Assembly (NCBI GenBank): GCA_002269645.1
Contig: NIVC01002797.1
Span: forward strand, 8,430-72,429
Reading direction: 5' to 3'
Origin: Macrostomum lignano
Taxonomy: Eukaryota
Length of the DNA stretch: 64,000 bases
Part shown: positions 1 to 27,486 of the stretch, piece by piece
Numbering within the stretch: position 1 is the stretch's first letter
How the letters are laid out: every line of letters starts with the position of its first letter
Notes under the pieces: generated by a model
What the model saw: only the letters and a program-made list of their open reading frames with translations
Database searches by the model: none
What the model was told of the DNA's origin: nothing
Position numbers and translations under genes: made by a program

Positions 1-1120
1 TGTCGCAGCCGTATCTGTGTGGAGTTTAGAGGTTGGAACGAAATAATAGTAAAATTCTGGAATTACAGATTGACCCAAAACTGTTTAGAAGCGTCAGCAC
101 GTAGTACGTTTGTCGATATACATATGGGAGACAATTACTTGGCGGAGTGACTTCTCATACAAAGGGCATCCGCCCTTGCCGGAGCGTCAAACATAGCTGT
201 TAACGGGTGGAGTCGCAGAACCCTCTGCTGACCAGTGGCGTCCACGTAAGCGACTCCATTGTGGCGAAGGTCGTTGAGAACGTCAACAACGACTGGCAAG
301 AAGGCAAAAAACTTCAACTCTTTGCTACTCGCCCAGACGCCAAGGGTAATAACGAAGCGAAGCCGCTGCTTGCTATGTACCTCCGTGATACTGAGGTACA
401 CGGGACACACCTTGATAGGGGTGGTTCGATGGTAGGGGAAAGCGTCCGAGGCGACGGTGTAGGAGACGTCTTCGTTGTCTGCCAGACGTATTCCCTCCAC
501 GAACTCCAGTAAAGTACACTGCTGTGGACGTCTAGTACGCCTGAGGGTCACTAGGGCGGATTAACACAACTAAATAGAATACCCGGTACACCAGCTGCGC
601 TTATTTCGAAATGCTGCTGTCATAATTGTGACAGACGTAATACCTGGAACTGGTATGCGATCCACAATCCGTCGCATCCGTCGCAAGCAATCCGTCGCAT
701 TCGATGTGCGTCCTAATGTGTCTCTTGACGTCGAGCACCCAGAAGTTGCCGACGTTGGTACTGCCACAGTGGGAGCACACATCACCCGGTCGACACGAGC
801 CGGTCGAATTGCTGGCACACGCACTGCAGATGGTGAAGCACTTGGACGTACCCAACACACTTGTGGACGCATTGGTGTACGATGTCAGTTTATAGACCGT
901 GCGAGGCCAAGCGTTGTCTGGTACAAGAAGGCGCTGGACGCCATTCTGCGACAATGCAAGGTCGCGCCTGCCCACTTGAATCTCAGAGACCGCGTCGCCC
1001 AGGGTGACAGGCAGAGAGGCGTGGAAGGGAACGTTCAGGAGCTCCTCGGCAGCGCCAGCATTGACTGGGTCAGCGGCATTCTCGGCCGCGACAGCGGCAT
1101 CCTCCAGCTCCGCGGCCTGC
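1..1120 (-). pseudogene. EnSpm/CACTA (Tnp2-like) transposase, frameshifted
   Basis: N-terminal motifs VPFHASLPVTLGDAV...LLVPDNAWPRTVYKL and CSAC...CSHC. Catalytic region VSYTVASDAFPY...VCPVYLSITEV...FDAPARA. A GT-AG intron (15-138) joins HSA-K to YGCD, restoring the conserved H-x-x-x-YGC motif. Frame disruptions occur around 500-690. Confidence 0.8.
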
Positions 1121-1132
1121 AGTAACTCACCC

Positions 1133-2372
1133 CGACAGTTGGCCAATGCGTGCACGAAATCATCGCCCGTGCAGCGAATAAAGCGGCAGGGCGAGACGGT
1201 TAGCAGCTGTATGGCCGACGGTAGTGGTTGGCGGGCCCGACCCGAGACACTGCCGTGGAGGCGGGCTGGAGCGTCTAAGCTGGCCAGGATTACCAGTTCG
1301 CGAAGCTCCGGCTGACGGGTAGCCAGCAGGCCTTCAGCTCGGAGCTTCTCGCACTGGAGCAGCGTCAGGCTCCTCAGCCTAGGCCACGCGGCGAGAAAAG
1401 AGCGGAGGCCGCGATCAGTCAATCGGACGCACTTTTCTAGACTGCATTACGCAGCTGGCTGCCGTTACGGCCGACGGCTGCAGACATTTGCGCGGCGAGT
1501 GCATCCGAAATAGCCGTACCGCCCACTGTCAACTCTCGCAGACTGGGCAACAACAGCCAGCAGTTCTGTAATTTGTATTTTGTTCAGTACCAGCTTAAAT
1601 ACTGGGTGGATGAGTGGTAAAACAAGTAAGTATTACAAAGTTAGTGGGCAAGAAAGTATCACTATGCAACAACTAAGTAACTACGCAAGTATTGAACACC
1701 CACCAACACTAGCGCCACATAAATCGACCACGACCAGGCCGCGCAAGCAAATCCCGCAATCCGATTGTAAGGCCGCGTCAATAACTCGGCAACGCCCGTC
1801 AAACGCCAGCCGTATCGATGAGAGCTGGCAAAGGAGGCTGCGGAACATTGGCTCGCAGGTAGAGGGGTCCGCCAGTGCTCCGACGTCGTCTATCTCGACG
1901 TGGGTGAGGCCTGGACAGCCGTCCACAATGGCCCTCAGAGCCTCGGCTGTCAGCATATCTCGGCAGTCCAGGAGGCGGAGTCTACGGAGTCGGTGACAGC
2001 CGCGGCCAACGGCGACCAGTGGGTTGGGTGCAGACTCGGTTTGATCAATCGCCGTTAGAAGGAGGTCCGGAGGTTGCGACAGTCGCGCAGCATGAGCGAC
2101 AGCTGCTGCAGCGTGGCGTCCCTCGGTTGATCCAGGTAGCCAAACTCCACTTCCTCCACCGTAGCCGCCAGCCAAACCCTCAGACATGATAGTGCCGATG
2201 CGGATGGGTCCCCGGCCTCGATAAGTGCCGGATCCAGCCGCAAGCGGCGCCACAGCAGGGGCTGCATTGCGACATCCAGGAAGCGGCGATTCACGTAGGC
2301 GCATTGCATAAGGCTCTGAACGTCGAGCTCCGCGAAAATCTGCGTCAGTATCTCGCATGGCAGTGCGTCCAT
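1133..2372 (-). pseudogene. F-box/LRR-repeat (FBXL-like) gene with at least two 1-nt frameshifts
   Basis: F-box MDALPCEILTQIFAELDVQSLMQCAYVNRRFLDVAMQPLLWRRL starts at ATG 2372. LRRs follow: CHRLRRLRLLDCRDMLTAEAL, CPGLTHVEI, LRELTVGGTAISD, KCVRLTDRGLRSFLAAWPRLRSLTLLQCEKL. Frameshifts lie near 2065 and 1445, and there is an intron at about 1567-1703. Confidence 0.85.
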
Positions 2373-2693
2373 GTTTAGCTGCAACAATGTTTAATGTCCG
2401 GGTCGATCTCATGCTCCTGCTCATTCTCTAGCTATATATAGCCTACGTGCCCATGTACTTTCCTATAGTTCTCCTACGATAAGTCTTATGTTCCAGCGAA
2501 AAGAGAAAAAGGAACTCTCAAAATATGTCGCTGTGCGCAAACGAACGCTTCTTCCGTAGTTACAGAATACAATTCATTTATTTATTTTCATACAGACAAT
2601 AAGTCTCGCAATGTGCAGGTACAAACCAAAGTAGCGCGCGCAAGGATACATCTGTTGGAAAGTGAACAAGTGACAAATGGTATTGGGGCCACA

Positions 2694-2978
2694 TTTTGAC
2701 CGCATCTGACCGCAATCCGATCTTTTTTTACCGCATTTCAACCGTATTTGACCTCATCAATTTGACCGCAAAAAACGGTCGAGGTGAACGTTTTTGGCCC
2801 GTTTCTTGACCGAATCTGACCGCAATTCGACCGTTTTTGACCGTATTTCGAACGTAATTTGACCTCATCAATTTGACCGCAAAAAACGGTCGAGGTGAAC
2901 CGTTTTTTGGCATGGTACGCGAAATCCGGTCAACTGCGGTCGAAGTGCGGTCACAAAGCCTAATTATTTTTTGCCGGG
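2694..2978. repeat. CACTA subterminal repeat block and terminus
   Basis: Multiple (T)GACCGCA motifs, an internal ~115 bp duplication, reversed GCGGTC motifs next to the end, and a ...TTGCCGGG end followed by TA. Confidence 0.75.
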
Positions 2979-3139
2979 TAAGCGTCTTAAAGATTAACCA
3001 AAGCTGCATATTAGCTGATAAAAATAAATTCCCAACTGTTGTGTTGTGGCGCAAACAGACAACGATTAATTACTTGTGAGCAGTCGAAATTTGAATGATT
3101 CTAAGTAAATAAGTAAATGATTATAAGTAAATAAACTAC

Positions 3140-3700
3140 GAGTATTTAAGGTCTGAGAACATCTAATTCAATGACCAGGTTCCAACAGTAATTGGAGCCC
3201 CAGAAATTATCAAAAGCAGCAATTACTTCTCCACTTGCCTCCTCCGCCAGCCTCTGACGCTTGGAGTTCTTGTCTGGATTAATTATTTTATCTTTAAGGT
3301 AACCTGTTCCAAACCTTTGACGCAGAAAGTCCCGAGCAAAGTGTTTCGGGCTGGCAAATTAACCCGATCCGTGTTCAGGCCTTCAGTGTGGTTGGCTTCA
3401 TTGAAGCCGAAGCTCTAGAAGAATAGGTAGGTTGGTATGCTCTAAAAAGGCATCATTGTCGATGGTATTCCACTAGAACAAAGGCTTACTGACTTTCTTT
3501 TCTTGGAAGCTTGAGAAAGGCCTGATTTCCCAGGCTGAGATCCAAAAGTCTTCCGGCAGGCTGCAAGTTTCGCAATCTCCTTTTGAAAGCCAAAGGCACT
3601 AACAATGTCAACTGACTGTTTTACTCGTAATGGAGCACCCTGGCACTTAGTGGCTTGATGATTTCAGCTTCACTGCTGCTAGAGCTACTACTTGAGCTAA
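3140..3700 (-). pseudogene. Degraded coding segment with a BEN-domain-like C-terminus
   Basis: An open frame at ~3145-3360 reads ASPKHFARDFLRQRFGTGYLKDKIINPDKNSKRQRLAEEASGEVIAAFDNFWGSNYCWNLVIELDVLRP*. A Ser-rich stretch lies upstream. The BEN resemblance is by eye only. Confidence 0.3.
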
Positions 3701-4899
3701 TATTTTAACTCTACGAGCTTGTATTGCAATCAGACTCCAATTCAAGACCTTTTACTCTCACTCTCAGAATCACAATCAACTTTAGTCTTAATGTGATGAA
3801 CCAAGGGAAGAATCCCAAGCGAAACTTCTTATTTCCTTGAGCGCTGCTGTCGCAGAGTCGGCTGAGATCAGGCTGATCGAGCGTACAATACACGATGGCC
3901 TCTTGCTAGGTGTATGACGCTGAGCTGATTGGGGTGGGAATCAGCATACGACACTCCTAATCCTGGCTCAGCTCTATGCAAGCAAATCCCGAAAAGACAG
4001 ACAGTAGGAGTGCTCACGATTTGCTCGCTGAACAACCGGGGGCATTGTTGTTCGCTGAAGGGCAACGGCCCGGCCCGGTCGTCGGCTCGGATTCGGTGTA
4101 ATAAAGGCGTCTCCTTTATTTATAATCGCAGCCCCAGGACACGTAGGCGCAACGGGGCAGCGTTGACCGAAAAGGGTCGAGCGCGAGGAAAGCAGGAGCC
4201 GTTGAGGCCTCATATAAATGTTCTAGGCAGGCCAGGGCAGGAATAAAAAGGGGGTTCTGTCAAACAGACGGACTCGCAGCCAATCAGAGTGAGCCAACTG
4301 GCTAAGCCAGCGCCGCGGGATACATTGCAAAAGGGTCGGGGAGGGGTTGACAGTACTAAAATACAAGACGAGAGGGGGGAACACTGCCCAATCAGGCACC
4401 GGTCGGCTTACGCAGGCGCCAGAGGGGTGGGACACAAACACAATGGGCGCAAGGACCACTAAAGTAGGAAAGGACGCAAGACTCAGAATTGGTGAAAATA
4501 TCATTGGATGCCGATTTTTCAATGTTTCTCCTGTGTACACTTTTGAACGTAAGATGCTTATTCTGTCGCAGAATAGGCATTAAAATATGCTCTTTGTATT
4601 AACACATCGATAAGTTGACAAATATTTTGAACTGTTAAAGTCTACTTCATTCAAAAGTACATCTAGTATCCATCTAGAATTATTGATTTTATTATGTCAG
4701 AACTAACAAAACAAAACATGTCATAAGAGACCAAAAAGCAAGGTACTCGTAGTATAAAAAGGGGAAGGGGTAAAATAATATTGCCCCCACAGAGCGAAAT
4801 ATTGCAAAAATACAAAAAATCAATGTACAGTAGAAACTTTCGGAGCCTGCGCGCATTAGAAGTAGACTGAGAAACCTTCGTTTCGCACAAGTCCTTTAA

Positions 4900-6700
4900 A
4901 AACATTCGATAGACGTCTGCATGGATATGCGAGCGACCAGGTCGGAACTGATTTGAATGGATTTGATTTGAATGTCAATAAATGTTTCAAAAACTGAGCA
5001 AAAACGTCCAATCACACGATTCAAACGAGTTGAGTGCAGCGAATTGAAATACGAATAGTCGTAGCACAATAGAGCGAAAAAGCAACCATTGGGGAGGATT
5101 CACCAGCTTTCCTCGAGATAAGACTCGTAAATTCACTGCATGCCTTACTATCTACAGTGTGACGAAAATCAGCAGAATCAGATTGAGGGATATCTTCCTT
5201 GCGTGCAGTGTAGCCACATATATAATAAAGTGCAGCTCCTTCTGTCTCAGAAACAGCAGCTTCATCAACTGACAAATGGTCAATGGCTGTGAGTTCAGCA
5301 TCACTTAAGTCTTCCTCGCTACAACATGCAGATTGTGGTTGCTCTGGTATTTTGGCATCAAGCTAGGCATACAACTCCATCCGAAACAATTTTGCAGTCA
5401 GGAAAACTTGCTCAACAGAGATAAAATAGCACCCTCCATGTCCTTGCCTATAGATTGAGAACTCGCCCTCAAGGGGGTCAGATTGGAAAGCACCTGGAAG
5501 TGGAAATACTAGCTTGGTTTTTTATGTATTTGCTATTCTATTCTTACCTAGAAAGACAAAGGTGAATAGCTGCTTGGATAGCAGGCATTTCGAAAGCTCC
5601 ACAAGACCTCTCCAGATTTGAATGACAGCTTTCTGTGTCTCTGTTGTGAGAGAACGCTGCCGTGCGGGACCCCGCCCTCAGCCATCTGCTCCGTCATGGA
5701 AGCAAATTGAAGAAGATAGTTTAAAGCTATGCGAGGCATCTGACACAATTGGAGCTCGTCTGGGGTGATTCAGAGTCCGGCGATCTTACATTGACGATCT
5801 TCAAAATTCAACGACAGAATGGACAAATTCGGCAGTGTCGCTATTACCATTGATGCGCAGTGTTGCAACTGTTTTTTTCGTTGAGCACATTTAATACGAT
5901 ATAAACTTCCTGGCGTTCAGGAGGCACAGGATTGCATGCCACCGCTGTGAGGGTGGTAGAACGAACTACCAGTTGGTGAGACTGTTGCTCAATTTGAACA
6001 ATGTGCTGCCATCTGGCACGGCGTAGAGGTTGCTCAGGTGTACAGCGAAAATCAATTTCTCCATGTCATTGTGTTAGCCAATTGTTGCGAATGTTTTTAA
6101 GCAACCGCATAGCAGAAACAATGAAGTGTAAAGGCAGATGGATTAATTGCCTTCCATGGTGACGCAGGTGATGGGTTCAACAACTGGAAGCAATTACGGT
6201 TCGTAAAGTGGTCATCACAAACCAAGCTCAGGAAAATGCCACCACATACATGGATTATTGCAATAAGTCGCACAAGTTGCTGGTGAAAAAAACGGGATTC
6301 AAGCTGTAGATTGGTATAAGACGAGCACCCGTGAGTGGTCTAACCATAATGGCCAAAACTGTACGTGCTAGCTTAGTTGAGTCATCTTCGGCATGCCCAA
6401 CTATGTGACAGCCACGAAGTCGAGTGGAAGATAGAACATAAACCTCATCAAAATTGATGGAGCAGAGCTTCTGTGATGTGGACACCACTCTAAATTGTGC
6501 TTGCACTAATCTCCGATAGTCCATATCGTTTCCAAAAGGGCCCCAACTGCCAAGATAGCACCTTAATGTAGCAGCGTGTGGTAGTGTGGTAGTCAGTAGG
6601 TCCTTCAGTGCGCGATATCCATTTCTGCGAGCTAAGTACGGTCTTTCAGTCGTTAAAATGTCATTTGATGTCTATCGCTCACTATGTTAAAGTCATTTGC
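4900..6700 (-). pseudogene. P-element/THAP9-like transposase, heavily decayed
   Basis: Motifs appear in family order: GYRALKDLLTTTLPHAATL, CSINFDEVYV, LVCDDHFTNRNCF, LLKNIRNNW, NEKTVATL...TAEFV...IVNVRSP, FQSDPLEGEFSIYRQGHGGCYFISVEQV, ALYYICGY. There are many stops and frameshifts. TIRs were not located. Confidence 0.85.
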
Positions 6701-7739
6701 AACTGGCGAAGTATGAACTGTTGCCTCTATCTTCGCCTTCGGATTGTTATTAAATGAATATATCCTTTAAAGTAGATCTGTTAGATTATGGATAAATTGT
6801 TTAAATTACCAAAGAAGAGACATTAACATTTTGTTTGAAATATTCTTCTTGAGGACATTATGTTATATATAACTACATAAGGGTCTATTAGCTAGACCGA
6901 TGTGGACAAGCGTGGTACCTCGCGGGTAGGCTACTGGTTTCTATTGCTAAGGATTTTACTAGTGGATTTACTTCCTACTGGTTTGAGACTTTTGGTAGTT
7001 CGCTGCCACCAGGTTCCTGCTGTTCCCTAATTCTAGCTTTAGGTTTAAGAACGCAGTCAGGACACCGATAAAGTTAGTTAACACAAGTTTAATAAAAGAA
7101 GTAAATTAATTGTTACGGTACAAAAGTTGGTTTGCTTTTACATTAACTCCCTATTTTAAGTTTCCCCGTTTATTTCCCCGTTCCCCGGGCAAGACTCCCA
7201 GTTATAGATTTGTTGTTGTTGTTGTTAAAACGAGGTGCCGTCGAAACCGGCGCGGGTCAGTTCCGAAGAACTCTGCCGCAGTTATATTTTGTATTTGATC
7301 GAAAGAATTAAAAATATTTACAAGATTTCGATTTGAATATTTATACGAATATTGAAATAAAAATATACATATATAAAACTATTTTTCAATAGTTTGCAGT
7401 ATTTTGCACGCATTTGGGGATAAAAAAGAGGGGAGGGAAATCCCACACAAAGAAGGGATCTAAAAAAACAGGACATCTAAAAAATACGTGCTAGGTATTT
7501 GAAGGCCTATTGAGAATAAAAGCAAGACATTTAAGTAAAAAATAGAGATTAAAAATGCAATAGCGCATATTTGAATTTAGCAGTAAAGGTGTAAAATATA
7601 GCGATTATGAATATTTGTAAAAAACAGTAGGATAAAAACACAGTTTGAGCAGTATAAAAAAACGAGCGCAGGGAGACTAGAGATTACCTAATCAGTCCTA
7701 GTGTCTGATCAGATCAGCCGATCTCTGTCTCAGGCAGCA

Positions 7740-8460
7740 AGTTTAGTTTTATTAATTGCGTTTCAGAGCGTAGTCACTTCCGGTTTGGGAGGCTGGTGGC
7801 CAGCCTAACGCTGGAGTGGGATTCCCCTGTTTCTTTCCCGACGCCTCATGGCATCCCAGAGGACATTGAGGACGGGGGTTCGGCCCGGAGCCCGAGGGGC
7901 ATCCGGCTCAATGTGGAAGCTGTGGAGCTTGGCTGCCCTCATCTTGAGCAGCCAAGCCACCCCCAGCTGCTTGACCCTGTCTGCGAGCATCGGCATACCT
8001 GCCAGCTTGTGCAGGTATTCGATGCTGATGTAGGATGGCACACCATAGCAGATACGGAGAGCCAGGTTTTGAATTTTTTGCAATTTGATTTGGTTAGTCG
8101 CACAAATTTGGCTCAGGATTGGCGCTCCGTAGGTGAGAGCGCTTTCTCCGTATGCCCTGTACAGCATTCTGAGGGTGGTGCTACTCAGCTTTGTCATTTT
8201 TGCAATTCTGCACAGTGACATTACAATGGCTCTGCTAGTATCTGCCATGTTGTCCACATGTTTGTTCAGGCAGAGGCTCTGGTCAAGGAGGACACCCAGG
8301 AATTTCACCTCCTGACAGTACGGAACTTCAGTGTCCCCCAGATACAGTTTGGGTCGCAAGTCCATGCGCCTAGTGGGTTTGTAGTTGAAAGCGATTGTTA
8401 AACGAGTGGTACGAATGTAGCGCACCTCGGAAGTTAATTGTCGGAGGACGGGAGAAGATG
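7740..8460 (-). mobile_element. 5'-truncated non-LTR retrotransposon (LINE, Jockey/I-like), RT C-terminal region
   Basis: ORF 7805-8425 reads EVKFLGVLLDQSL...KHV...LYRAY...LTYGAPI...KLQKIQNLALRICYGVPSY...LHKLAGMP. An AATAAA and A-rich tail follow on the minus strand near 7745-7755. Confidence 0.85.
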
Positions 8461-9154
8461 CTTTCCCAAGAGCCCAACTGCTCTGTAGTTCTAGAGAAAC
8501 CCCAAAACTAGCGATTTACCCCCGCTCTAATTATTTTCCCGGGTTAAAACTACTGATAGTAGGCAAAAAGCATATTTGAACCCACAATAATTCCCGTTCC
8601 TAAAATAATGCCCTACTACAGATGGCTATCGTATAATTACATTGCAGTCAAATGGCACAAAAACAGCACTAGCTACTAAATAAATAAAATCAAGGTAAAT
8701 ATACTGTTCTAGTATATTTCGTAAGAAATAATATAAGATCTGCACAAGTAGTAGCTATTAAAATATACTAAATAGGTCCAACAGTGTCAAAATCGCGGAA
8801 TAAGCAAAATATTGAATATATTCTTATATATTATTTTATAGAGGTTAGGCAAAACACTTCAAGGGCATGCTGAGGGAGGCGCATTCAGCACATTAACTAT
8901 TGTTACCCTTGCCACGGACTTTTTGCCTCCGTGCTAATTAAAGTTGATGCAGCTTGCTTAGAAGAGGCAGGCTACTTTTCTTTAATAAAATTGAAAAACA
9001 AGGCCAAGCCAAGGGTGGCGGCCCATTCTAAGAATCTAGGATGATGGTGCCTCATTCTTGAAACAACTGAGGATCTGGGAGACTGGCCCAGCAACTGAGA
9101 ATCTGGATTAGCCCATAGTCAGGCATACATCGCACACTTCTCTCTCCTAATCAG

Positions 9155-11718
9155 ACTCGGTCCTGCAGGCCAAAGAAGACGAGCGACCCCTGGTGTTTCT
9201 GCTGTACCGCTCCGAGAAGGACTCCGAGCCGGAGGCGCGCATCGAACTCGGCGCCATCGTACGCGGCCTTCTGGCCCAGCAGTTGCTGCTGCAGACAGTC
9301 GGCGAGCTGTCCGGCCAGGCCAAGCCCGTGTCCGCGGCCGACTATGTGCAGGGCTCGCACGCGATGCAGCTGGCGGCTGCACTGCTGGAGTGCTACAATC
9401 TCAGCAGCCAGTTCGACCAGCGGCCCGGTCTGAAGTTTCTGCTACAGAAGGCCTGCAGAGTGCGGGTGGCCGCTAATCTCTATAAGCAGGCCGGATTAGC
9501 TGTGGGGTACCTGGCTGGCTTGCTCATCCCTTTGGCTGTGCGGCACTCGCTTGGTAGGTTAAATTGCTCATGCGTGCTCCATAAGATTACCGCCCGAAAT
9601 TGCTTGTATGAGTCACCCCTGACCTGCTGCTGACCCCATGAGTCTGACCTGCTGCTGACCCCATGAGTCTGACCTGCTGCTGACCCCATGAGTCTGACCT
9701 GCTGCTGACCCCATAAATCTGACCTGCTAACCCCATAAATCTGACCTGCTGCTGACCCTATGAATCTGACCTGCTGCTGACCCTATGAGTCTGACCTGCT
9801 GCTGACCCTATCAATCTGACCTGCTGCTGACCCCATGAATCTGACCTGCTGCTGACCCCATCAATCTGACCTGCTGCTGACCCCATGAATCTGACCTGCT
9901 AACCCCATAAATCTGACCTGCTGCTGACCCTATGAATCTGACCTGCTGCTGACCCTATGAGTCTGACCTGCTGCTGACCCTATCAATCTGACCTGCTGCT
10001 GACCCCATGAATCTGACCTGCTGCTGACCCCATCAATCTGACCTGCTGCTGACCCCATGAATCTGACCTGCTGCTGACCCCATGAATCTGACCTGCTAAC
10101 CCCATAAATCTGACCTACTGCTGACCCCATGAATCTGACCTGCTGACCCCATCAATCTGACCTACTGCTGACCCCATCAATCTGACCGACCTGCTGCTGA
10201 CCCCATGAATCTGACCTGTTGCTGACCCCATTAATCTAACCTGCTGCTGACCCCATGAATCTGACCGACCTGCTGACCCCATGAATCTGACCTGCTGCTG
10301 ACCCCATAAATCTGACCTGCTAACCCCATAAATCTGACCTACTGCTGACCCCATGAATCTGACCGACCTGCTGCTGACCCCATGAATCTGACCTGCTGCT
10401 GACCCCATCAATCTGATCTGCTGCTGACCCCATTAATCGCCCCTGACCCGCAGGCCGGTCGGACTTTGCCGCTCTGCCCAGCTCAGCCCTGGAGGCCAGC
10501 CCTTTCATGCGCCTGCCGCCGGGCTCTGATTGGCTGGGCAAGCCGGAGATCGCCTACCTGATTGGCCACGCCATGTCCGTGCTGACCCACACCTACCTGG
10601 ACCTTCTGGCCAGCCGCGACTGCCTGCAGGCCGCCGACCGGCTGTCCGAGCGGCCGCTGCTCTTCCTGCTGGTTGCCCAGCCTGACGATGTCGCCTCGGC
10701 CATCGCCAGCGGCACGTCGGCCAGCTTGGACGGCGGCGTCGCGACGACGTCCGGGGAAGCAGCAGAATCTCCGGCCTCTTCCACTGCGGATGCACAGCAG
10801 CAGCAGCAGCAGCAGGTGTACAGCCTGGCTGGTGACAAAGCCATCGGCAAGCTCATGGCCGAGTACAAGCGGCGCAAGCTGGCGCACAGTCTGCCTCAGC
10901 AGTCGCGTCATCATATTGGCCACGCTGCGCCGTCTGCAGCTGCTGCTGGCGCCGGCGGGTCCAGCGGCTACTCCGCCGAGAGTCAGCAGCATCAGCAGGT
11001 GGGGAGTGTGTGGTAGACAGGGACCGGGAGTGTGGTAGAAAGGGACCTGCGTGTGTGGTAGACAGGGATCTGGGAGTGTGTGGTAGACAGTGACCTGGGA
11101 GTGTGTGGTAGAAAGGGATCTGGGAGTGTGGTAAACAAGGATCTGAGTGTGTAGTAGACAGGAATCTGGGAGTGTGGTAAACAAGGATCTGAGTGTGTAG
11201 TAGACAGGAATCTGGGAGTGTGTGGTAGAAAGGGATTTGGGAGTGTGGTAGACAGGGATCTGGGAGTGTGTGGTAGACAGGGACCTGGGAGTGTGTGGTA
11301 GACAGGGATCTGGGAATGTGTGGTAGACAGGGATCTGGGAGTGTGTAGTAGACAGGGATCTGGGAGTGTGTGGTGGACAAGAACTGAAACTTCGAGCTTG
11401 TGAACGCGACACAACCGTGACCCTTGCTGCTCCGGCCAGGTGCACGCCGAGCAGGCCGTCTCCCTGCTGCGTGACTCGGACGCCCGGCTGGCCAGCCTGG
11501 CCGGCATGATCGCCCAGCTGCTGCGCCCCATCCTGGACCTGCCGGACTCGGCATTCGCCGCCTGCCTGCCGGCGGTGTCCAGCCAGCTCGGCCTGCTGGT
11601 GGCCGGCGCCGAGGACCGGCGGCTCCGCGACCTGCTTGGCCGGTTCAGCGGCCGGCTGGCCGGCTGCTTCGGCTTCCTGCCTGACTGTCTGGCGGAGGAC
11701 CTGGCCGAGGATAACTAA
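9155..11718 (+). CDS. ARFGEF3: ARFGEF3/BIG3 C-terminal part; exons 9155-9553, 10454-10998, 11440-11718
   Basis: SQFDQRPGLKFLLQK...AANLYKQA and the terminal ILDLPDSAFAACLPAV...DRRLRDLLGRF match the BIG3 C-terminus. GT-AG sites are canonical and phases are consistent (1,0). Upstream exons are not in the window. Confidence 0.85.
9621..10435. repeat. Intronic minisatellite, 25-bp unit GACCTGCTGCTGACCCCATGAATCT with 22-bp variants
   Basis: Tandem copies fill the ARFGEF3 intron 9554-10453. Confidence 0.95.
11006..11380. repeat. Intronic minisatellite, 25-bp unit GTGTGTGGTAGACAGGGATCTGGGA
   Basis: Tandem copies in the ARFGEF3 intron 10999-11439. Confidence 0.95.
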
Positions 11719-12253
11719 ATAACTGGCCAGAGGGGCTCAAGGATTTTTATCTACAATTTAAACTGGATTGGCAAGCCTCGCATATCTGTAATTATAACTA
11801 CAGAGATTCCGCCAAGACGTTTCATGTTTCATCTAAGTCCCTCCGGCTCTCAAGGGACTAGCTCGTAAAGGGGTAAAATGAGGGTTTCATGTCAATTTAA
11901 TGCTCTCGAATGGAACTAATGATAGCAATATTCACACGACGGTTGTGAGCACACTCCTTCGGTGACATGGTCCCACAGCCCATGGTCCCATGGTGTACCA
12001 GGGTGTACAACGGCCCGACTTTCTAATCGTCAGGCATGTACACTCCCTGTACCTTTAGGGTTGGCTCAACAGGTGTGAATCCCACGACAACCCACAGGCT
12101 AATTTTCGTGAATTTGAAGTCCACTGTTCCTGAAGTTATCGATATTGCAACCGATATGTATAGTAAGCCATTAAAAGCACTTCGGAGTGAAAATTAACAA
12201 AATATTCGGCAGGATCGCGAGTCTAACTATCTGGGCCATTTAACGCATGTAAG

Positions 12254-12467
12254 CTACTTTCAGTTCAGTAGAAAGTTAAGCATTTTAAGCTTTTTCCAAG
12301 CCTCTTTCCCGGACCTGCCGTCCAATTTTTATTGCCTTCCTCGGGAGTTCCGGAATCTCAGCGGCGCTGACTAATGTACACTAACGGCATCCATCACTCC
12401 AGCTCCAATTGGCTTTCTTTTCATGAAATAGCTTACGCATGCTTCCTTGCTACTGAACTGAAAGTAG
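12254..12467. mobile_element. MITE-like element, 214 bp
   Basis: Perfect 18-bp inverted repeat CTACTTTCAGTTCAGTAG (12254-12271 / 12450-12467), extended imperfectly inward. AG dinucleotide on both flanks. Confidence 0.6.
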
Positions 12468-13322
12468 AGTAGCTGTCATGCCGAGCTTTTTTCTCAAAGC
12501 GCAGATCTCTAGTCACAAAGTAATTTTATTTTTAGTCAGCCAGGCAAAGCCAGCTTAATTGATAATTTTGATAATTATTATGCAGCTTTTCTTTTGTCTC
12601 CTTGTGCGTCCTGTGTGCAGCATTTGTTGTGCAACAAAGACCTACTGTTGTTATAATGATTAATCTTATTATTATCAAGTCAAATCTTGCATTATTTTCA
12701 TCTCTCTCTCACTAATCTATACGCTCGTATTGGTGTTGGCTACTTTTGTTGGATATTTTGGTAATTTAATCAGACAAAATTGATTGTGTACCATCAAGCA
12801 GAGTTTAATATCAAATTCAACATAATAATCATGATATTGATTTACTATGACTGTTAGTGATTTTGTCTTGTTTATTCCAATTTAAATCCAAATGCATTTT
12901 TGGTTCCGCATGTTGTCCGCGTCCGCGTGTCCAATGGCTTCTTTCTCCGCTAGGTTAGTTGTTTTTCCTTTGTTTTCCATTTTAACTCTTAGATTTGACG
13001 AGTAAGATATTATATTCCTGTTATTGATATAAAGTGAGCCACCTTGTATTTTCATCAGCAATTATATTAATTTATTGGTGTTTCGGTGTTTTCTGTCTTC
13101 TTTTCCGTGCAAGCAAGTTTTGAGCAGATTTCTCAGCCATAATCAAGAATATTGTGTCTCGTGTCTGTTATAAATATAATGCATTATATACGCAGCCTCC
13201 CTCGCGCCTTGCGGGAAAGAGATGTGCATATTAGCTAATATTGAAATGTCGGCTTAATGTAGATGCTAATTGAAACCATACTTCAATGTATATATGTGAT
13301 ATACTATTAATAATTCATAACT

Positions 13323-13341
13323 TATATATATATATATATAT
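13323..13341. repeat. (TA)n microsatellite
   Basis: Pure TA run. Confidence 0.9.
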
Positions 13342-14463
13342 TTGCTTTATACCCCAGGACAGCAATAGCCTATACAAAAGCAAAAGGAAATGTGCGAAAC
13401 GGGGACGCTAAGCAAGCCAGATATTAACAAATTTTAAGCGAAAAACAAATAATAACAAAAAGATGGCCTGGAAGGCAAAACGAGGCGGAGGGTCAGGCAG
13501 CGAAATAATATACAAAGCTGTTACTGTGCAGTGCAGTAGTAAACTACTCGCAGTAGTGCGCAAAGGACATGGACACGCGATGATTGGAGCATTGGAGGTG
13601 TTAATTTTACTGTTAATACGGCAGCACCGCCTAACCTGAAAGCTGGGTGAGAAAGCTCAGTTATTTTGCTATTAAATAAGCATTCACTAGTCACATAAAA
13701 AACAGTACATGATGTATATATATTATCTAATACATTCGATTAAATCCTGTATATATTTAAAAGTACATTTGTGCAATCACTGCTTAAAATGGGTCGCTTA
13801 TTCGCCAAGTGCCAGAAGCATGCAGAAGTGCAATGCTCAGAAATTTGATTGAGTTAATTTAACATTCATTCCCTCACACCGGACATAAAGTGCCACCAGC
13901 CAACAGCGGTGCAATTGTTGGGGAAATTGCATTCAAAACATTTAGCTAGAAATGTATGTTCAACTTCTAAAAAACAAGCCAAACAATTGGCGGTTTAAAA
14001 AGACAAACAAGCAACATTGCAGAAAGACGATAACTATACAGAATCCAAAAACTGCTACTAATAGTATTATTAGTAATCAAATAAAATTAACAATAACAAG
14101 CCGAAGAGAATTGCAAATCAGAAATTTCATGTTATCTTCATGTATCAGTCAGTTATGTGTGAGTGTCTAAATAACAGCGATAATGACAGTCAAGACAAGA
14201 GACAGAAAAGTCAGTAAGAGAAAAAAAGCAGAAATTCTGGGCAGTAGCAGTAGCAGCAGCATACCAAAGAGATTCTTTGCTGAGCTAAAATTGCATGTGT
14301 CAACTGTTAAAAAATATAATAAAAATGCGCCAAATTTAAACAAAAAGTAAAAGATATTATTTGCACATTATATGAAAAAACCTGCACTGTTCTTCTACTT
14401 AAAGTAGCAACGACATTTTAAATGTTTTAAAATAAAATTTATTAATTTGAATTTAAATGTTGC

Positions 14464-17347
<2,884 letters not shown>

Positions 17348-18099
17348 TTATGCTAGAACATAATCTGAGTGCTGATGTGTGATATATAGAATCACATTGA
17401 TGCAGATTATAAACTACAATGCATTGCAAAAACTTCAATTCAATAGATATTAGAATGTGGACAAAATGGGACAAACTAAATAAAAGGTAAAATTAGTTCT
17501 TAGACATTTTAGAATCAGAGTTTGATTAAGCATAGTATATTAAATAATCATTTATAAATAGACTTCAAGAAAATGTTCCTTTTCACATCCAGCCTTCTGT
17601 ATTTTTTTAGATTTTCAATGGTTATATTAAATCATTGAAATTATTAATTGAATGGTTGCTTAAGACAAAAAATTCAGTTTAATACTTTACTATGCAAAGT
17701 CTAATTACAGGATTATATTGATCAGATTTAGTATATTAATATTTCTTGTTTAAATAAAGAAACTATTATCTATAATAAAAGATGATAGATTCCAATACTT
17801 TGTGAATTAAAATTGACACATAAATTTGGGGGGGGGGCAATCTTTGAATCCTAGGATTTGGCCTTTTTTAGTCTGGGATATATGGGTATTAACCTCAGGG
17901 ATCTTTAAAGGATTAAGGAATATTATATGGTTTGCACAAAAGTTCTAGATTTTAAGATTTTAGTAAAAGAAAAGTTTGGGATTTTAATTGAAGTCCCTAA
18001 GAGAAATATGCTGTTTTATTATTCATGCCTGAAGTCAAAATTGCAATAATAACAAATAAAACTAATATTGTTTTATAATTAACTTGATATATATAGGAT

Positions 18100-18176
18100 T
18101 CAATACTTGGTTTTGAGTGCTTAAATGTCTAGGTCACAAGTGCACAGACATTTAAGCAAGAGAAACCAAGTATTGA
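18100..18176. other. 77-nt near-perfect hairpin
   Basis: 31-nt arms (18100-18130 / 18146-18176) are complementary at 27/31 positions, with a single 4-nt internal mismatch and a 15-nt loop. Confidence 0.7.
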
Positions 18177-18694
18177 GTAGTATTATAACACAATATATAT
18201 TTCTTGTGCATTAAATGACTCCAGCCAATATCTATATAATCACGAGCCATATAAAGCATACTTTTAGTGTTTAACTAGCATCTTACAACCCCCTTTGGAC
18301 TTGGAAGACTTCAACCAGCAGTGAAAAAACTCATTTATTTTTGTCTGCAAGTTACTTACCATTACAATTAAGACACAACTTTAAGAAATTAAATCTCACA
18401 GACCTCATCTTTTTTATAGAAAAAAAGCTTTTAAAAACCTTGAAATTCTCATAAAAGATATCTTCGCATGATTTTTTTATAAGATAAATCCCCTCCAATT
18501 GACTTTGTACCAGTTAAAAAGATTGCTACCCTCTCCCATAAGCATTTGAACTTAAGGCAGAAGCATTGACCATAAACAATAGGATTTGCATCTGCACACC
18601 AAATTTTTATTTGTGGCTGTTATTTATTATATTATATTATAAAATAAATGCAAAAACACACATGTACACAATGGTCTTAGCTTTAGTATATTTA

Positions 18695-18762
18695 TTGCAA
18701 TCTCTAGAGTGTTATGGACATTCAAGCAAGCATACAAACCTTAGAGATTTAGTATATTTAGA
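18695..18762 (-). mobile_element. Isolated 5' fragment of the Helitron-like family
   Basis: The reverse complement reads TCTAAATATACTAAATCTCTAAGGTTTGTATG...ATGTCCATAACACTCTAGAGA, like the unit starts at 23229 and onward. Confidence 0.75.
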
Positions 18763-19378
18763 TAGATTATAGTTCAAGATTACGTTATATATTATATCAG
18801 CAACACAGATAAAGCTCAAGAAAATTCAGGACAATCGAAATCAGCCATGGGCTATGGGCTATATAGCCTGTAATATATATGTCCAAGTTGCTTCTACATA
18901 CTTTTTATCTGCCAATGTTCAGGAAACAAGTTGGTTCAACATACCAACTGTGCTCTTTCGCTTTCTGCACAAGGCAGCAATTTGTTTGCAACAACTGCTT
19001 TTTTCTCTCTACCTATTTCTGTCTGGGCACATTCAGAAACTTATTGCTCAGCCCTCATATAGTCAGGTGTAGGTCTATCTTTAAGTGAAGTATATAATGA
19101 CTCAAAGAATGTACACCAATATATATATAGGATATATATATATATATTCAAATGTACAAGTGTACATATACAAGTTAGTTTGCCAGACATATACAGTATG
19201 TAAAGAGTGTAGCCTACAGGCATAGGGTATAGGCTACAGTGCAGTTTAGTACTACAGTCTACAATGCTATATAAGTGAATAAATGAATGATAAATTGGCA
19301 ATCTTCCAGTTTGTTTGGCAATATTATTTTTGAGTTTGAAATGGTATGTCAATATAGTGAAGCAGCAGAAAACAATAC

Positions 19379-20256
19379 CTATAGCCAAAAGGGATACAAA
19401 ATAGAGTCTGATAAGTAACAGTAATAGTTAAGGGGCAGAAAATAGAGTTACAGAGGATAATAATGTGCTACCCAATACAGCATAGCGCCAAATGCTGCAC
19501 CAGGGTATAGGTAGTACAACAGAAATTCCTAAGATGCAGTTCAAAGAGGGCATCAGATATACTATGCATATTGTTAGTTTCTGGGTTGTTAGGTTCAGCA
19601 GTTCTGCCATAGGCCGTATCTTGTTTGGTGGCACAATAAAACTTGGTATTGCTGGTTGACCAGCCATGTTAAAGAAATTCATGTAAATATGAGAGTAAGA
19701 ATCTAAGTGAAGTCAGTGAAATCAAAATGTCTTTAACAAGGCAGTGCTTATCCCCACGGTATCGTAGGAATAATTTCTGTCTTATTCCAATGGTACCGTG
19801 GGAATAATTTTCTGCTTATTTGCACGGCACACTGACGAGATCGCTGCCATATCTTTTACATATATATGCTCTACATGAATAGTTTATAGCTTTTTGAAAG
19901 GGAATTTGAATTGAGGATACTAAGAAGCTGTTGATCTGGATCAACACCATGACCAGCGTTTTTTGTATAAAAAAGCCATTAAATCTTTACTTCTATTAAA
20001 CAAATTGTCGAGCAAAGTTATGTTGTTATACTGCACTTGAACTGTAAGTACTAAACTAAATTATTCCCATGGCATATGTAGAAGATAGGCCAGCTATCTT
20101 ATCAGTGTGCTGTGCGGATAAGCAAAAAATTATTCCTATGGTACCGTGGGGATAAGCACTGCCCTTTAACAATGCTATTTTGCATCCCTTTTGGCCATAG
20201 ACTATTACTGTCACTGTTACTTGTCAGACTCTATTTTGTATCCCTTTTGGCCATAG
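19379..20256. mobile_element. Inverted-repeat element (~50-bp TIR-like arms) hosting a nested MITE
   Basis: CTATAGCCAAAAGGGATACAAAATAGAGTCTGATAAGTAACAGTAATAGT at 19379 is mirrored at ~20205-20256. No clear TSD. Confidence 0.55.
19740..20163. mobile_element. MITE, 424 bp, 9-bp TSD (Merlin- or MULE-type)
   Basis: ~50-bp TIRs start GGCAGTGCTTATCCCCACGGTA. A perfect TSD CTTTAACAA sits at 19731-19739 and 20164-20172. Confidence 0.9.
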
Positions 20257-21111
20257 TCCATAGACATAATTTTCTGGCATGCTATTAAGTTGTAGCACCA
20301 ATCCAAACTTGAAAATAATGTCGCAAAAGAAACTGGAAGATTGCCAATAAATCAATCAGTAAAAAGAGTGAGGGCAAGAGAAAGGGAAGAGAAATAAGGT
20401 ACTTCCATTTTTTAATAAGCATGCTACCCCCCCCCCCTAGTCCTTCAGTGTGATGGTACATAGGTAAGTCACAAATCTGGACAAAACTAAGTTGTACTAG
20501 ATGGTTAAAATTTTGAGGTTGGGCATATATGAGTAGCATTTTAGGTAAAAAAGTAAGTCACATAGTCAGTGTAAATCAGGGGAATTGTACATGTATATGT
20601 GCCAGTATCTATGATATTTCAGGTTATACAATAGGTATGCAAAAAATGAGGACTTATATACTTATGTTATAATTTAGTATTCAAATTAGGCCCTAGAAAA
20701 AAACATCAAAATTAGGCCTAACCAAATTTATATGAACAATTAGACAAAAAAATATTATAAAGCAATATAATCTAATATTATATTTATACTTATATATCAT
20801 GTAATCATTATTGTGACTAAAAAATCTAATGGCCAAACTAATTAGTGGGTATAATAGGCCTAGTCACTATAGATGAAATACTTGTCTTTGGGGCAAAACA
20901 TCTATGGTCAGAATGGATTTAGGATAAAACAACTAGGCCTTAGAATTCATATTTTTTAATATAGATAATTAACATTTATATATCTAGTATAGATATAGAT
21001 TAGATTCCCCCCCCCTTCAAAAATGTTCTGGATCTGAGCCAGGCCTAAAATACTAACAGACATTGTTCATAATTCATAAAGGGCCTAGGCTAGGCTTAGG
21101 CCTATAGGCCT

Positions 21112-21507
21112 AAAGTCCTACTTTGCTGCGTTAAATTATTTTGACGATAAAAAGTTAAAATCACGCTAATTAGAGTTACAGTTACACTGGAGTAGAGTTA
21201 GGAGAGTAGTTAGAAGGACGTAGGCCCATGTCAGCAATTAATAGTAGTGAGCAACCCAGTACATGAAGTTGCCGAACGTCTTCTCTGGGAAGAGGCGGCG
21301 CCAGAGGAACTCATTCAGGTGAGTCTCGAACAGTGCATCACTCGTGCCATGCATCCTTCGGAATTTGTCCTTGACATGTGCCCACGATCCCTCAATGGTG
21401 TTGGTGTGCACGGTGGGGTCGTTAGGGTCGACAAAGTGCAGACGGTGGTTCACCGTTCAAAAAAAAAGAGGTCAAAATAATTTAACGCAGCAAAGTAGGA
21501 CTTTGCC
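21112..21507 (-). mobile_element. Internally deleted Merlin (IS1595/ISXO2-like) DNA transposon
   Basis: Perfect 34-bp inverted repeats (21112-21145 / 21471-21504). The retained transposase C-terminus at 21238-21453 reads VNHRLHFVDPNDPTVHTNTIEGSWAHVK...HLNEFLWRR. Confidence 0.85.
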
Positions 21508-22299
21508 GGCCTAACCTATAAGCATTGAAAACAAGCCTGCAGATCTTAATTATCCATACGAGTTATAGGCCTAGACTAGGCTACACGCTAGTCTTAGGGC
21601 CTACCGCCTAACCGAGGTAGCGAGCGATGGTGTGAGACTGAGAAATTTTAGTCAATTGCCATTGATCGTGAGCGTCTACCTACTAACGTAACGTCTTATT
21701 GAGGTCGACGACGAGCGGGTTAAGATTATGATTATGGTTTAGAGTAAAAATGGAAGTTCAGAATTAATGATAAACAACCTATTTTTTTAAGTTAGCAAAA
21801 ACGCACATTACAATTTTAATTTTTTTTAAAGTTAAATCAAAATTGTTTTATTTGTTATATTATCAAATAAACAAGATTTTAAATCTGCTAACTTTTACTT
21901 CATTTTAGCCTCGGGAATGACCCCCAAATTTAAGTCCAGCCTTTAGCTTATTTTCTGTGGCTTAATAATGCATTTAGACTATGCTATAAAATTACAAAAT
22001 TAGAGGAGACTGCGATTGATCATTAATTTGTGTAGCTACCAAAATAAAAAAATTGCTCATATTACAAGAATTTTTACGGATTGCCAGGATCGGATATGTA
22101 ATGTAATGCAAAAACTGTCTTACATGTATCGTCGGGTCGCCTGCCAGGTTTACATGTAGCTGAATGGGTCATGGAGGCGACGTCTCCCCGCTAATCTGAA
22201 CCTAGGAAATTTATACGGGCCGCGTAGTAGCCTGCAACTACGCGGTCCTGTCAACGGTCAGAGTAGAGTAGTAGTCGATCTTCTGGCAACTAGTAGCTT

Positions 22300-22950
22300 G
22301 TCAACGGGAGAAAAACCGAAATGATGCACATCGGCACCAGCACCGCGCCCGAGCTGAGCCTGCCGAGCGGCGAAGCGATCTCAACCTGCCAAGACTTCTG
22401 CTACCTTGGGCGCGCTCATGATCTTGAATCCAGAAGATATCATCACGGACCGGAAAGCACAAGCCTGGCGTGCTGCAGTCAAGATCAGCCCTATCTTCAG
22501 CTCGGCAGCGCCCGACGCCCTCAAGATCAAGTTGTTCCGCACCACAGTCAAACCGATCCTGCTCTACTACGGACTGGAAGCCGTACCGGTGACTACCACC
22601 CAAGAAAACGCGCTAAACGGCATCCTCCGGGCGCTTCTCCGCTACACACTCGGCATCCGATTCCCCGAGACCATCTCGAACCGCGATCTCGACCGGCGCA
22701 CCGGCCTTCCACCTCTCAGCGTTATCCTGCGGCGGCGACAAACCCTCGCCGGCCACGTTTCACCCACCGCGAGAACGGCTTCGACGCGGCCAAGGCCGGT
22801 GCTGCCACGCTGATCCAGACTCTGACTGACGACCTCAGCGACCTTGACCTGACCCCGAGTGACACTGCTGATCTCTGCCCCTCTGAGCTGTTTCGCGAAC
22901 GCGTGCGCGCTAGGATTCTGTAACCCAAATTCTATTCCTCTATTCTATAG
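22300..22950 (+). mobile_element. 5'-truncated RTE-like LINE fragment, frameshifted
   Basis: QDFCYLG / RKAQAWRAA...KIKLFRTTVKPILLY(Y)GLEA...LRALLRYTLGIRFPETISNRDL...LPPLSVILRRRQTLAGH. A short ATTCT-like repeat tail follows 22923. Confidence 0.85.
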
Positions 22951-23228
22951 TAGCCTGCAGCAAAGTCAACCATCTGTATACTTGGTATACATGCAAGTGT
23001 CTTGAACTAAATTTGTGACCGAGATAACAATTATAGGGCTTCCGTGCTACTTTCACCGATCTGAGGCACGTACTATTTTCATAGATTCTGTATGTTTGAA
23101 AAGCTATATTTCCTACATGTATTTCATTTACTCGGAACTCGATTACTCGCCGACCAGGACTCGTACAGTATCGTCGTTTAAAATCATTCAAAATTATTAA
23201 GTATTTTTGGATATCCTCTATCACAATA

Positions 23229-25637: not shown

Positions 25638-27486
25638 TCTAAATATACTAAATCTCTAAGGTTTGTTTGTATGCTTGAATGAATGTCCATAACGCTCTAG
25701 AGTGAGCAATTCTTCACCGATTTTGATCGTGTTTTCGCCAAAAGATTCAAAATTGTCTGGAAAGAAGACAGTTAAAATTTCTTGTATCTGCTTCAATGCT
25801 AAAGGGATTAAATATTCGAAAAACTGTTTTAAATGGGCGACTTCAATGTATTTTTTATCAACCTGCTCGCAGCGAGAGAATTTCACAGCCAATTTTAATG
25901 ATTGCGCCAGAGCCAACTGATCAGAAAACTCAGTGAGCCCCACTGCCCAGATAATTACTTTATTTAAATTGCGCAACCATACCAGGGGTCAAAAATAAAA
26001 TTACTCTGAATGCTGGGCATATTCTAAAACTCTAATCTATGTCCATGTAAAACGCTCTACAGACTGCAATTCTTGACCAATTTTGATCGCGTTTTCGCCA
26101 AAACATTCAAAATTGTCTGAAAAGAAGACAGTTAAAATTTCTTGTAGGTGCTTTAATGTTTAAGGTATTAAATATTCGAAAAACGAGCTTTTCGAATGCT
26201 TTTAATGAAAGGCCAAGCAAGGTTGAATTCTTGACTGGCTGAATTTTCATTCTAAATGATTGCGCCACAACAGCGTTCTGCATAGTCTCGCTATAAACTG
26301 ACTCTGAGCTTTTTAGGTGGACGCAGTGTGCCAAGCATTGCGCAAGCATTTAACTGCTCAGTGGCTGTGTGTGCATTCTTCTGACCCTGGCTGAATGGCT
26401 CCGTCAGAACCAAACCTGTGCACACTGAGCATGCCTAACACTGCTATGTATTTGACTGCAATGTCGAAGCATATATGGCTGATTTTTGCGCCCTTCCATC
26501 AGTAGGCGGAATAGCCGCAGTGTAGGCACTAGGTCTAGGTTTAGGCTAGGCGTAAGGTCCCAGGTTCGAGTCCACCTCGGTGGATAATTAAAACAAATTA
26601 ATTCATTCATTTGTAGCTTGTGACTCGACTGAATATAACATATTTTTTATTAATTTTAATTGCAACATTTTTTATTAATGCAAATTAATTTTTGCTACTT
26701 GGCACAAGCCACTTATCAAATTTGATTTTAAAAAACTGCTTCGTGTATTACTGATCCCATCAATGAGTACTGCCTAGCTCCATGAAAGTATGAAATTGCT
26801 ATTAAACTGCAGACTATTCTGCTAAAATTGCTTAAAGGTATTGCTAAATTTTGAGCTTTTTAAGAATGCCGATATGAATTGAAAATTGATTAGTGAGCCG
26901 TAAAATGCTGAGCACATTTTTATATTATTGGAGATGAGAACTGCAGATGCTGAGGGGAACTGCAGATTGTCGAAGCTATCATTCATGCACAGTGGATACT
27001 TGCAGGCTGCTAAGAGTATGACTGCAGTCTGTTTGCGGGATTAGAAGTGATAGCTAATTTCAGGTTGTTGTGGAGATAACTGCCGATTTCTGGGGGGAGG
27101 GGTTAACTTCAAACTGCTGAAGTTACTAAACCTCTTGAATAGTATAAGGCTTTTAGTAGAAGGTCGGAAGCTCGAGTCTGTAGTGAAGCAGCGAATTTAT
27201 CTTTGTGACAATAATCATTGTTTCCTATGAGTATTCATGCAAATTTTTAGCATTTTCATTTTGTAGATACTTTTGCTGGGGCTACGCTAAGCTTTAAGAG
27301 CAGCGCTAATCGGGGAGAGCAGTGCTAATCTGATGTATAAAATAAAATAATAAATATGTAAGGGGATTACAAATCAACTTTAACCTGCAAGTTGACAAAG
27401 CATTTCATATGGTTTCGATTATCCAGAAACAATATGGCAATAAGCAAAGATTAGTGGCCATCTGCTCACTGATTGTGCAAAACAGT

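Follow-up and report, generated by a model that had tools for sequence, protein, structure and literature searches.

The stretch analysed here, 64,000 nt of the genome of the flatworm Macrostomum lignano (contig NIVC01002797.1) and called the window throughout, carries at its left end a transposon-derived element that occupies positions 1-2978 and is read on the minus strand, from 2978 toward 1. In that direction a terminus, CCCGGCAAAAAAT, and its subterminal repeats are followed by a candidate TATA box, an ATG at 2372, an F-box, CC-type leucine-rich repeats (LRRs), and a Tnp2/EnSpm-like transposase. The transposase, and the element with it, extends past the window edge at position 1, and the second element end lies outside the window. 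Three-frame translation, with the pieces joined into one spliced gene, gives a model with two GT-AG introns, in which exon 1 covers 2372-1700, exon 2 covers 1542-139, and a third exon leaves the window from position 14. A preliminary description of this DNA had seen an F-box/LRR gene within a CACTA transposon, lying between terminus and transposase on one strand and fused in frame to the latter. The placement of the gene is borne out by a Pfam F-box, an alignment to FBXL2, the match of the transposase to a protein designated P0001, and the repeats at the terminus. What stands of the description is an F-box/LRR gene inside a decayed Tnp2/EnSpm-like transposon; a designed fusion is unlikely, and the CACTA label says too much.

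The F-box is recognized by Pfam at residues 7-51 of the open reading frame (ORF) 2055-2387. The CC-type LRRs downstream align with FBXL2 over residues 91-300 (phmmer against the PDB, E 2.3e-10) and more weakly with FBXL17 (E 5.6e-4), and none of the Pfam LRR models reaches its threshold on the window gene. The LRR matches returned by a search of representative proteins come from plants, ticks, and metagenomes, and are generic and uninformative on this gene. Modeling the single F-box/LRR sequence with AlphaFold yields a mean pLDDT (predicted local distance difference test) of 35.5, which is unusable. Some 320 bp of AT-rich DNA separate the gene from the subterminal repeats. Base composition, whether overall guanine-plus-cytosine content (GC) or that of third codon positions (GC3), does not separate the F-box/LRR cargo from the transposase in a comparison in which some reading frames were misassigned.

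Homology to transposases starts at SLPVTLGD (1017). A HMMER scan of 1.84 billion representative proteins, using the junction ORF and the core fragment as the query, gives 82 matches. The best is P0001, a protein of 863 aa with 40% identity (E 3.7e-49, query residues 132-419 against protein residues 108-388), followed by two metagenome proteins and several from M. lignano; P0002-P0007 are related. Among the 64 relatives reached by phmmer, D286 is invariant and D372 nearly so, and both aspartates are present in the window copy. Splicing of intron 2 produces ...SHSAK/YGCD, which agrees with AKYGCD, a motif that all relatives conserve. Pfam models do not detect the window transposase fragments or their near relatives P0001-P0007, while among the 64 relatives PF02992 (Transposase_21, tnp2) is found in 41 (best E 7.1e-18), Plavaka in three, and DUF4218 in two. 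By transitive homology the window transposase is thus probably a distant member of the EnSpm/CACTA-type group at the superfamily level. As a label, CACTA is too precise, since the termini read CCCG... and the window transposase itself falls below the PF02992 threshold, which only its relatives pass.

The family comparison covers the window copy and six related loci (L001-L006), among which L001 and L004 are complete elements. L001 lies on a Tara Oceans marine metagenome contig (ERZ976238 k127_1411745, 10.2 kb) that bears P0001. The element spans 97-10043 (9.95 kb), with inverted repeats of 33 nt (CCCGCTGAAAAAATCGTCCGG..., 97% complementary) and subterminal tandem arrays at both ends (repeats of about 153 bp at the 5' end and about 111 bp at the 3' end). 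Its 863-aa transposase gene is intron-less and is preceded by a 3-kb AT-rich non-coding stretch. L004, the locus of P0007, is a 13.85-kb element of M. lignano at 9053-22906 (on NIVC01002297.1, about 83018-96871), bounded at 9053 and 22906 by perfect 14-nt inverted repeats, CCCGATTGAAAATC. It contains 42 TCGGCACT motifs, all in the two subterminal regions save for one internal site at 13603. A terminus-like site inside L004 (18242-18255) lies apart from any subterminal motifs and can probably be put down to chance.

At the window terminus, the bases from 2978 downward read CCCGGCAAAAAATAATTAGG..., and the flanking DNA from 2979 reads TAAGCG. The ends of the three elements (CCCGGCAAAAAAT in the window, CCCGCTGAAAAAAT in L001, CCCGATTGAAAAT in L004) are all of the CCCG type and none is CACTA or CACTG, the CCCG and the A-run after it being common to the window terminus and to the inverted repeats of L001 and of L004. 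The subterminal region of the window has inverted arms at 2817-2850 and 2920-2953. There are 11 TGACCGNA sites in the whole window as against 4.4 expected, a count reached by no shuffle, and nine of the 11 fall inside the subterminal repeats; these motifs are presumed to be transposase-binding sites. Comparable arrays are present in L001 and L004, and in both, as in the window, the terminus 5' of the transposase gene points outward. The CCCGG terminus and subterminal repeats already noted in the preliminary description are therefore real, given the 111-bp repeats, the motif enrichment, and the likeness to the L001 and L004 inverted repeats. Could 2694-2978 be a stand-alone miniature element? 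This was rejected, as its inner edge has no matching terminus.

Table 1. Features of the element at the left end of the window, listed in the direction of reading (2978 toward 1)
Feature	Position	Strand	Basis or remark
Outer terminus, reads CCCGGCAAAAAATAATTAGGCTTTGTGACCGC	2946..2978	-	Alignable with the two inverted repeats of L001 (CCCGCTGAAAAAATCGTCCGG) and with those of L004 (CCCGATTGAAAATC)
Subterminal repeats: 111-bp unit x1.9 (2696-2907) and inverted partial unit; TGACCGNA motifs in both orientations	2696..2953	.	Repeat and motif analysis
Candidate TATA box TATATATA, 61-68 nt 5' of the ATG	2433..2440	-	Inferred from sequence reading
Start codon (2372-2370) and F-box domain (MDALPCEILTQIFAELDVQSLMQCAYVNRRFLDVAMQPLLWRRL)	2235..2372	-	Pfam PF12937 E 5.9e-13, PF00646 E 6.7e-06
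Exon 1, F-box and first LRRs	1700..2372	-	1-nt deletion at 2067 (CRNLR/DLLL, G run); colinear with L004 F-box/LRR
Intron 1, 157 nt, GTGTTC...CCCAG, phase 2	1543..1699	-	GC 0.38 versus about 0.6 in exons
LRR part of exon 2 (LRELTVGG ... ALANCRG)	1131..1542	-	Frameshift at about 1444-1445; 40% identical to L004 16295-16729; alignment ends at CRG
Junction GTGAGTTACTGCAG, splice donor then acceptor-like CAG, read through as ELLQ	1117..1130	-	Donor conserved with L004
Acidic, Ala-rich 33 aa (AAELEDAAVAAENAADPVNAGAAEELLNVPFHA), remnant of the low-complexity acidic N-region of the transposase	1018..1116	-	Alignment and N-termini of relatives
Conserved transposase N-terminal region, cysteine cluster CSAC (817-828), CSHC (766-777)	604..1017	-	Alignment with relatives
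Degenerate segment, stops in all three frames and a frame change	540..603	-	Relatives have about 8 codons at this point
First part of catalytic core; conserved aspartates SDAFP (D 444-446), FDAPARAD (D 186-188)	139..539	-	Alignment
Intron 2, 124 nt, GTAATT...CACAG, phase 2, GC 0.38	15..138	-	Not in L001
Start of next transposase exon (YGCD)	1..14	-	Gene model and family motif; gene continues beyond window

The family is marked by ends that start with CCCG and by extended arrays of subterminal repeats; its elements measure about 10-14 kb, and its transposases, of about 850-950 aa, are followed by a second gene. By these sequence comparisons the family is probably a distinct one inside the Tnp2/EnSpm-like (CACTA-Mirage-Chapaev) group. 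The second gene is common to L001 (7509-8237), L002 (5097-6365), and L003 (2932-4416), with the motif ...YWVV...(L/I)LKGP(F/Y)E.K..A..A... and no Pfam match, and in L003 and L002 it has a long, low-complexity tail that resembles a coiled coil. Matches in the other loci are weak (E 0.12 in L004, 0.0033 in L005, and 0.013 in L006), with an equivalent ORF directly 3' of the transposase in L005 and L006. Within the window, blastn, tblastx, and tblastn found no further copies or fragments of the element, and the terminus pattern matched only a chance-level site at 8530. Exact look-ups of two ORFs in public assemblies had no match. Metagenome contigs, scanned with the junction ORF and again with the transposase alignment, gave none either, and neither did a scan of viral contigs.

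The evidence that ties the F-box/LRR gene to this family comes from L004. There the transposase (10001-13589) is followed by an F-box/LRR gene at about 15234-17368 and by an ORF at 19106-21312 that is weakly the family's second gene. Searched against L004, the window F-box/LRR protein matches 15329-15820 and 16295-16729, and both matches share the strand of the L004 transposase. The L004 gene has its own F-box (PF12937, E 3.8e-12) and at least four exons, and the two proteins are colinear from the first F-box residue, with 34% identity over 374 residues (145 bits, E 3e-43; 125 bits by phmmer). Their likeness to FBXL2/SKP2 is weak (43 bits for the window protein and 26 bits for that of L004), and their divergence from one another resembles that of the two transposases (28-34%). 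The idea that intron 1 keeps its position in both genes was rejected, since the L004 acceptor is 11 codons upstream from that of the window. At L004:10265-10690, in the coding region for the N-terminus of P0007, a 60-nt unit is also repeated seven times in tandem (97% matches), and so the N-terminal low-complexity region of these transposases must be very plastic.

A homologous F-box/LRR gene is thus found inside the closed termini of a complete related element. With its perfect inverted repeats and its specifically homologous gene, L004 gives independent support to the earlier suggestion that a family of transposons possesses an F-box/LRR gene of its own. As far as homology between predicted genes can tell, this shows that the pairing recurs in the family and that the lineage carries the gene as cargo, and the gene in the window is likely to be transposon-borne. 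It would either travel with these elements or be acquired by them repeatedly. We consider it fairly probable that positions 1-2978 represent the 5' portion of a DNA transposon copy that is dead, has undergone an internal deletion, and has an F-box/LRR gene aboard. We infer that this accessory gene recurs or is inherited in the family and is no isolated capture.

Several findings weigh against this. Only two of the seven loci carry the gene, and the non-carriers include L001, whose transposase is the closest to that of the window; tblastn and hidden Markov model searches from the two F-box/LRR proteins found none within reach in L001, L002, L003, L005, or L006. The gene is therefore absent from most of the family members compared, and it does not occupy the same position in the two carriers, being upstream from the transposase in the window and downstream from it in L004. 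A single ancestral acquisition would thus call for a rearrangement, the alternative being two acquisitions. Frameshifts are present in both copies of the gene, although those of L004 may be assembly errors. Protein searches by word index, run both with the complete conceptual protein and with its F-box/LRR portion, gave 8000 candidates each and none that was significant, which is no evidence of absence because low-complexity LRR words probably saturated the filter. Finally, the complete relatives have no visible target-site duplication, their flanks being AAT/CCT in L001 and CAG/TCA in L004, and in the window copy a duplication is unreadable since the second end lies outside.

The strongest competing explanation, a serious one though in our view rather unlikely, is passive capture, in which this element and separately L004 each took in an F-box/LRR gene of the host, whole or in part, and the cargo never served the transposon. 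The five loci without the gene, its differing position, and the frameshifts in both copies all fit this explanation, as do the host-like introns of the cargo and a GC content near that of host exons. What it leaves unexplained is that two related elements share one divergent, colinear type of F-box/LRR gene that is only weakly like canonical FBXL, and taking the same kind of gene twice by chance is improbable without selection. The cargo in the window also has its own ATG, with a candidate TATA box lying immediately internal to the subterminal repeats. Capture of host genes is known from CACTA and Mutator-like elements of plants, where the pieces are usually fragments peculiar to one family. 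The window element resembles them in having host-like coding sequence with introns between a transposon end and the transposase, but its gene is nearly complete and recurs in a related element. Were passive capture correct, the locus would be an ordinary gene capture in a dead transposon.

The manner in which the accessory gene and the transposase are joined raises a separate question. ORF 601-1422, described earlier as running from the LRRs into the transposase without a stop, is real as sequence: it passes from the LRRs (...ALANCRGELLQ) through the 33-residue acidic stretch into the transposase. The donor G/GTGAGT is found in both genes (TGTCGGG/GTGAGT in the window, at 1137-1125, and TGTCGTG/GTGAGT in L004), and it is at this donor that the similarity between the two F-box/LRR genes stops. 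In L004 the donor splices in frame to an acceptor at 16892, leading to about 160 further LRR residues up to the stop; the corresponding donor of the window is separated from the acidic N-region by no more than 14 nt of intron-like sequence. In relatives the transposase opens with basic residues, such as GERRRRYMRLYRLRGRARAE in P0001, and continues with 60-200 acidic ones, and the window copy is without the last F-box/LRR exon, without the basic N-terminus, and without most of the acidic stretch. Since each partner breaks off precisely where the two meet, at a point within an intron, an internal deletion is the simplest reading and the most likely origin of the in-frame join. The deletion would have extended from just inside intron 3 of the F-box/LRR gene into the region coding for the acidic N-terminus of the transposase, removing the last F-box/LRR exon and the basic N-terminus, and by a one-in-three chance leaving a single reading frame. 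The fusion protein is then probably an accident of this copy or sublineage, even if it was possibly made and used for a time, and the idea of a designed fusion is not upheld.

It is very unlikely that a subfamily encodes a working F-box/LRR-transposase fusion of which the window copy is merely a decayed example. Such a fusion would agree with the single ORF that covers both parts, with an F-box that is complete and has its start codon, and with the retention of every conserved transposase part from SLPVTLGD onward. However, the join is found 1-14 nt past a conserved splice donor, in what is intronic sequence, the two protein parts seen in L004 and in the relatives are both gone, and a join in frame is to be expected by chance one time in three. 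In none of the 64 relatives does the transposase share its protein with an F-box or LRR domain. Splicing across the 14-nt remnant, as a natural route to a fusion, was also rejected: the remnant is too short, and splicing the phase 1 donor to the phase 0 CAG would destroy the frame.

The window copy is dead, killed by later frameshifts and stops. Its three lesions are the 1-nt deletion at 2067, the frameshift at about 1444-1445, and the segment 540-603 with stops in every frame, so that the decay surmised in the preliminary description is confirmed by two 1-nt frameshifts and one segment closed in all three frames. An intron in place of 540-603 was tried and rejected, as it would remove residues conserved in the family.

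Least credible of all is a chance neighbourhood in which 2694-2978 is a separate terminal fragment and the F-box/LRR gene a host pseudogene abutting a 5'-truncated transposase: the window is repeat-rich and the boundaries of the element are not closed within it, but the terminus faces outward in the orientation expected at the start of this transposase gene, as in L001 and L004, the order, strand, and common level of decay fit a single unit, and the same gene sits within closed inverted repeats in L004. A variant, in which the locus is a decayed domesticated host gene, fares no better, since a domesticated gene would be intact and would not retain a terminus; here terminus and repeats are present and the frame is broken at three places.

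F-box/LRR proteins are substrate adaptors of SCF (SKP1-cullin-F-box) ubiquitin ligases. By analogy with this known role of the F-box, an intact protein from the element would bind SKP1 and present a target held by its LRRs to the SCF ubiquitin ligase, and the target could be either a host protein that keeps the element in check or products of the element itself. Extending the analogy, we propose tentatively, as a possibility that we ourselves regard as doubtful, that an EnSpm-like lineage of flatworm-like animals encodes its own F-box/LRR adaptor, which would direct to SCF either the element's transposase or a host protein, perhaps one active in silencing, chromatin, or repair. The degradation of silencing factors by this adaptor, raised in the preliminary description, is speculation. 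Viral F-box proteins such as polerovirus P0 and the ankyrin/PRANC proteins of poxviruses supply the functional analogy behind this mechanism, being cases of a genetic parasite with its own SCF adaptor; they have no sequence relationship to the gene described here and belong to viruses rather than transposons. If the gene is a true accessory gene, then transposons, like viruses, can bring their own ubiquitin-ligase adaptor, and the LRR target would offer a concrete handle on a host protein that limits these elements. To our knowledge, eukaryotic DNA transposons with host-acting accessory genes are few, the VANC proteins of VANDAL elements being one example and the TET/JBP genes of fungal KDZ/EnSpm-like elements another. 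Transgenesis works in M. lignano, and with a complete carrier element at hand, the idea can be tested directly there.

Comparison with known systems places the element more precisely. It shares with CACTA/En-Spm elements (Tnp2-type, PF02992) short subterminal repeats arrayed in the two orientations (in the window, L001, and L004) and, probably, a transposase of the DDE type whose N-terminal part bears a cysteine cluster; PF02992 matches 41 of the 64 relatives. The related elements are also large, at 10-14 kb, and have a second gene 3' of the transposase. The window element differs from CACTA/En-Spm elements in its CCCG termini, in the lack of a visible 3-bp target-site duplication in L001 and L004, in a transposase which, like those of its six nearest relatives, falls below the Pfam model, in its animal rather than plant hosts (a flatworm and marine organisms), and in the F-box/LRR gene aboard. 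Fungal KDZ, Plavaka, and EnSpm-like DNA transposons carry a gene for a TET/JBP dioxygenase (PMC12730594). In both cases related transposase groups recurrently bear one kind of accessory gene that possibly acts on host control of transposons, although in fungi the gene encodes a DNA-modifying enzyme, whereas here it is a presumed ubiquitin-ligase adaptor with two known carriers and, as assembled, broken frames.

F-box domains have also met transposase domains in host genes, as in the F-box::Mariner HTH (helix-turn-helix) genes of Caenorhabditis and the F-box::CxC7 (KDZ/Zisupton) genes of zebrafish (PMC12062965). In F-box::CxC7, as in the window ORF, an F-box and a cysteine cluster of the CACTA/KDZ transposase type share one polypeptide. 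Both of these are expressed host genes with no transposon ends, in which one transposase domain is retained, while the window gene is inside transposon termini, has LRRs, is followed by a whole catalytic transposase, and belongs to a dead copy. The preliminary description had presented the pairing as unfamiliar, and this must be qualified: the zebrafish genes are a precedent for an F-box with a KDZ/CACTA-type cysteine cluster (PMC12062965), and it is for an F-box/LRR gene carried inside a DNA transposon that the searchable literature yielded no report.

The rest of the window contains other coding sequences and repeats. Exons of a JNK (stress-activated MAP kinase) gene are present at 14464-16735 on the minus strand, the best full-length database matches being only about 60-66% identical; the 120 best of 2170 hits included no Macrostomum protein. 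The same minisatellite occurs twice, about 5 kb apart, beside or within this JNK-like region (10483-11554 and 16135-16735), and creates long false ORFs in several frames. On the plus strand, an ORF at 9193-9633 weakly resembles the C-terminal domain of BIG2 (E 2.2e-4, under the Pfam cut-off) and is possibly an exon of a Sec7-type exchange factor. A CLCA-like gene lies at 56393-57136, plus strand (Pfam CLCA N-terminal, E 1.2e-18), and about 6 kb past it on the same strand (62388-63375) a Ser/Thr-rich tandem-repeat coding sequence (SSTESSTT...) may be the mucin-like tail of the same gene. ORFs resembling C-terminal parts of the reverse transcriptase of non-LTR (long terminal repeat) retrotransposons are found at 7805-8425 (minus) and 22321-22923 (plus), with no Pfam match at E 0.01. 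A family of four ORFs on the minus strand (22940-23533, 23944-24234, 24306-24626, and 25656-25976; ...LKLAVKF...HLKQFFEYLIPLALKQI.EILTVFFPDNFESFGEN...), without a Pfam match and with two copies identical as protein, represents a local repeat or gene family. Long tandem arrays at 53751-54587 and 55141-56017 look like coding sequence and are open in several frames on both strands; they are probably satellites rather than genes.

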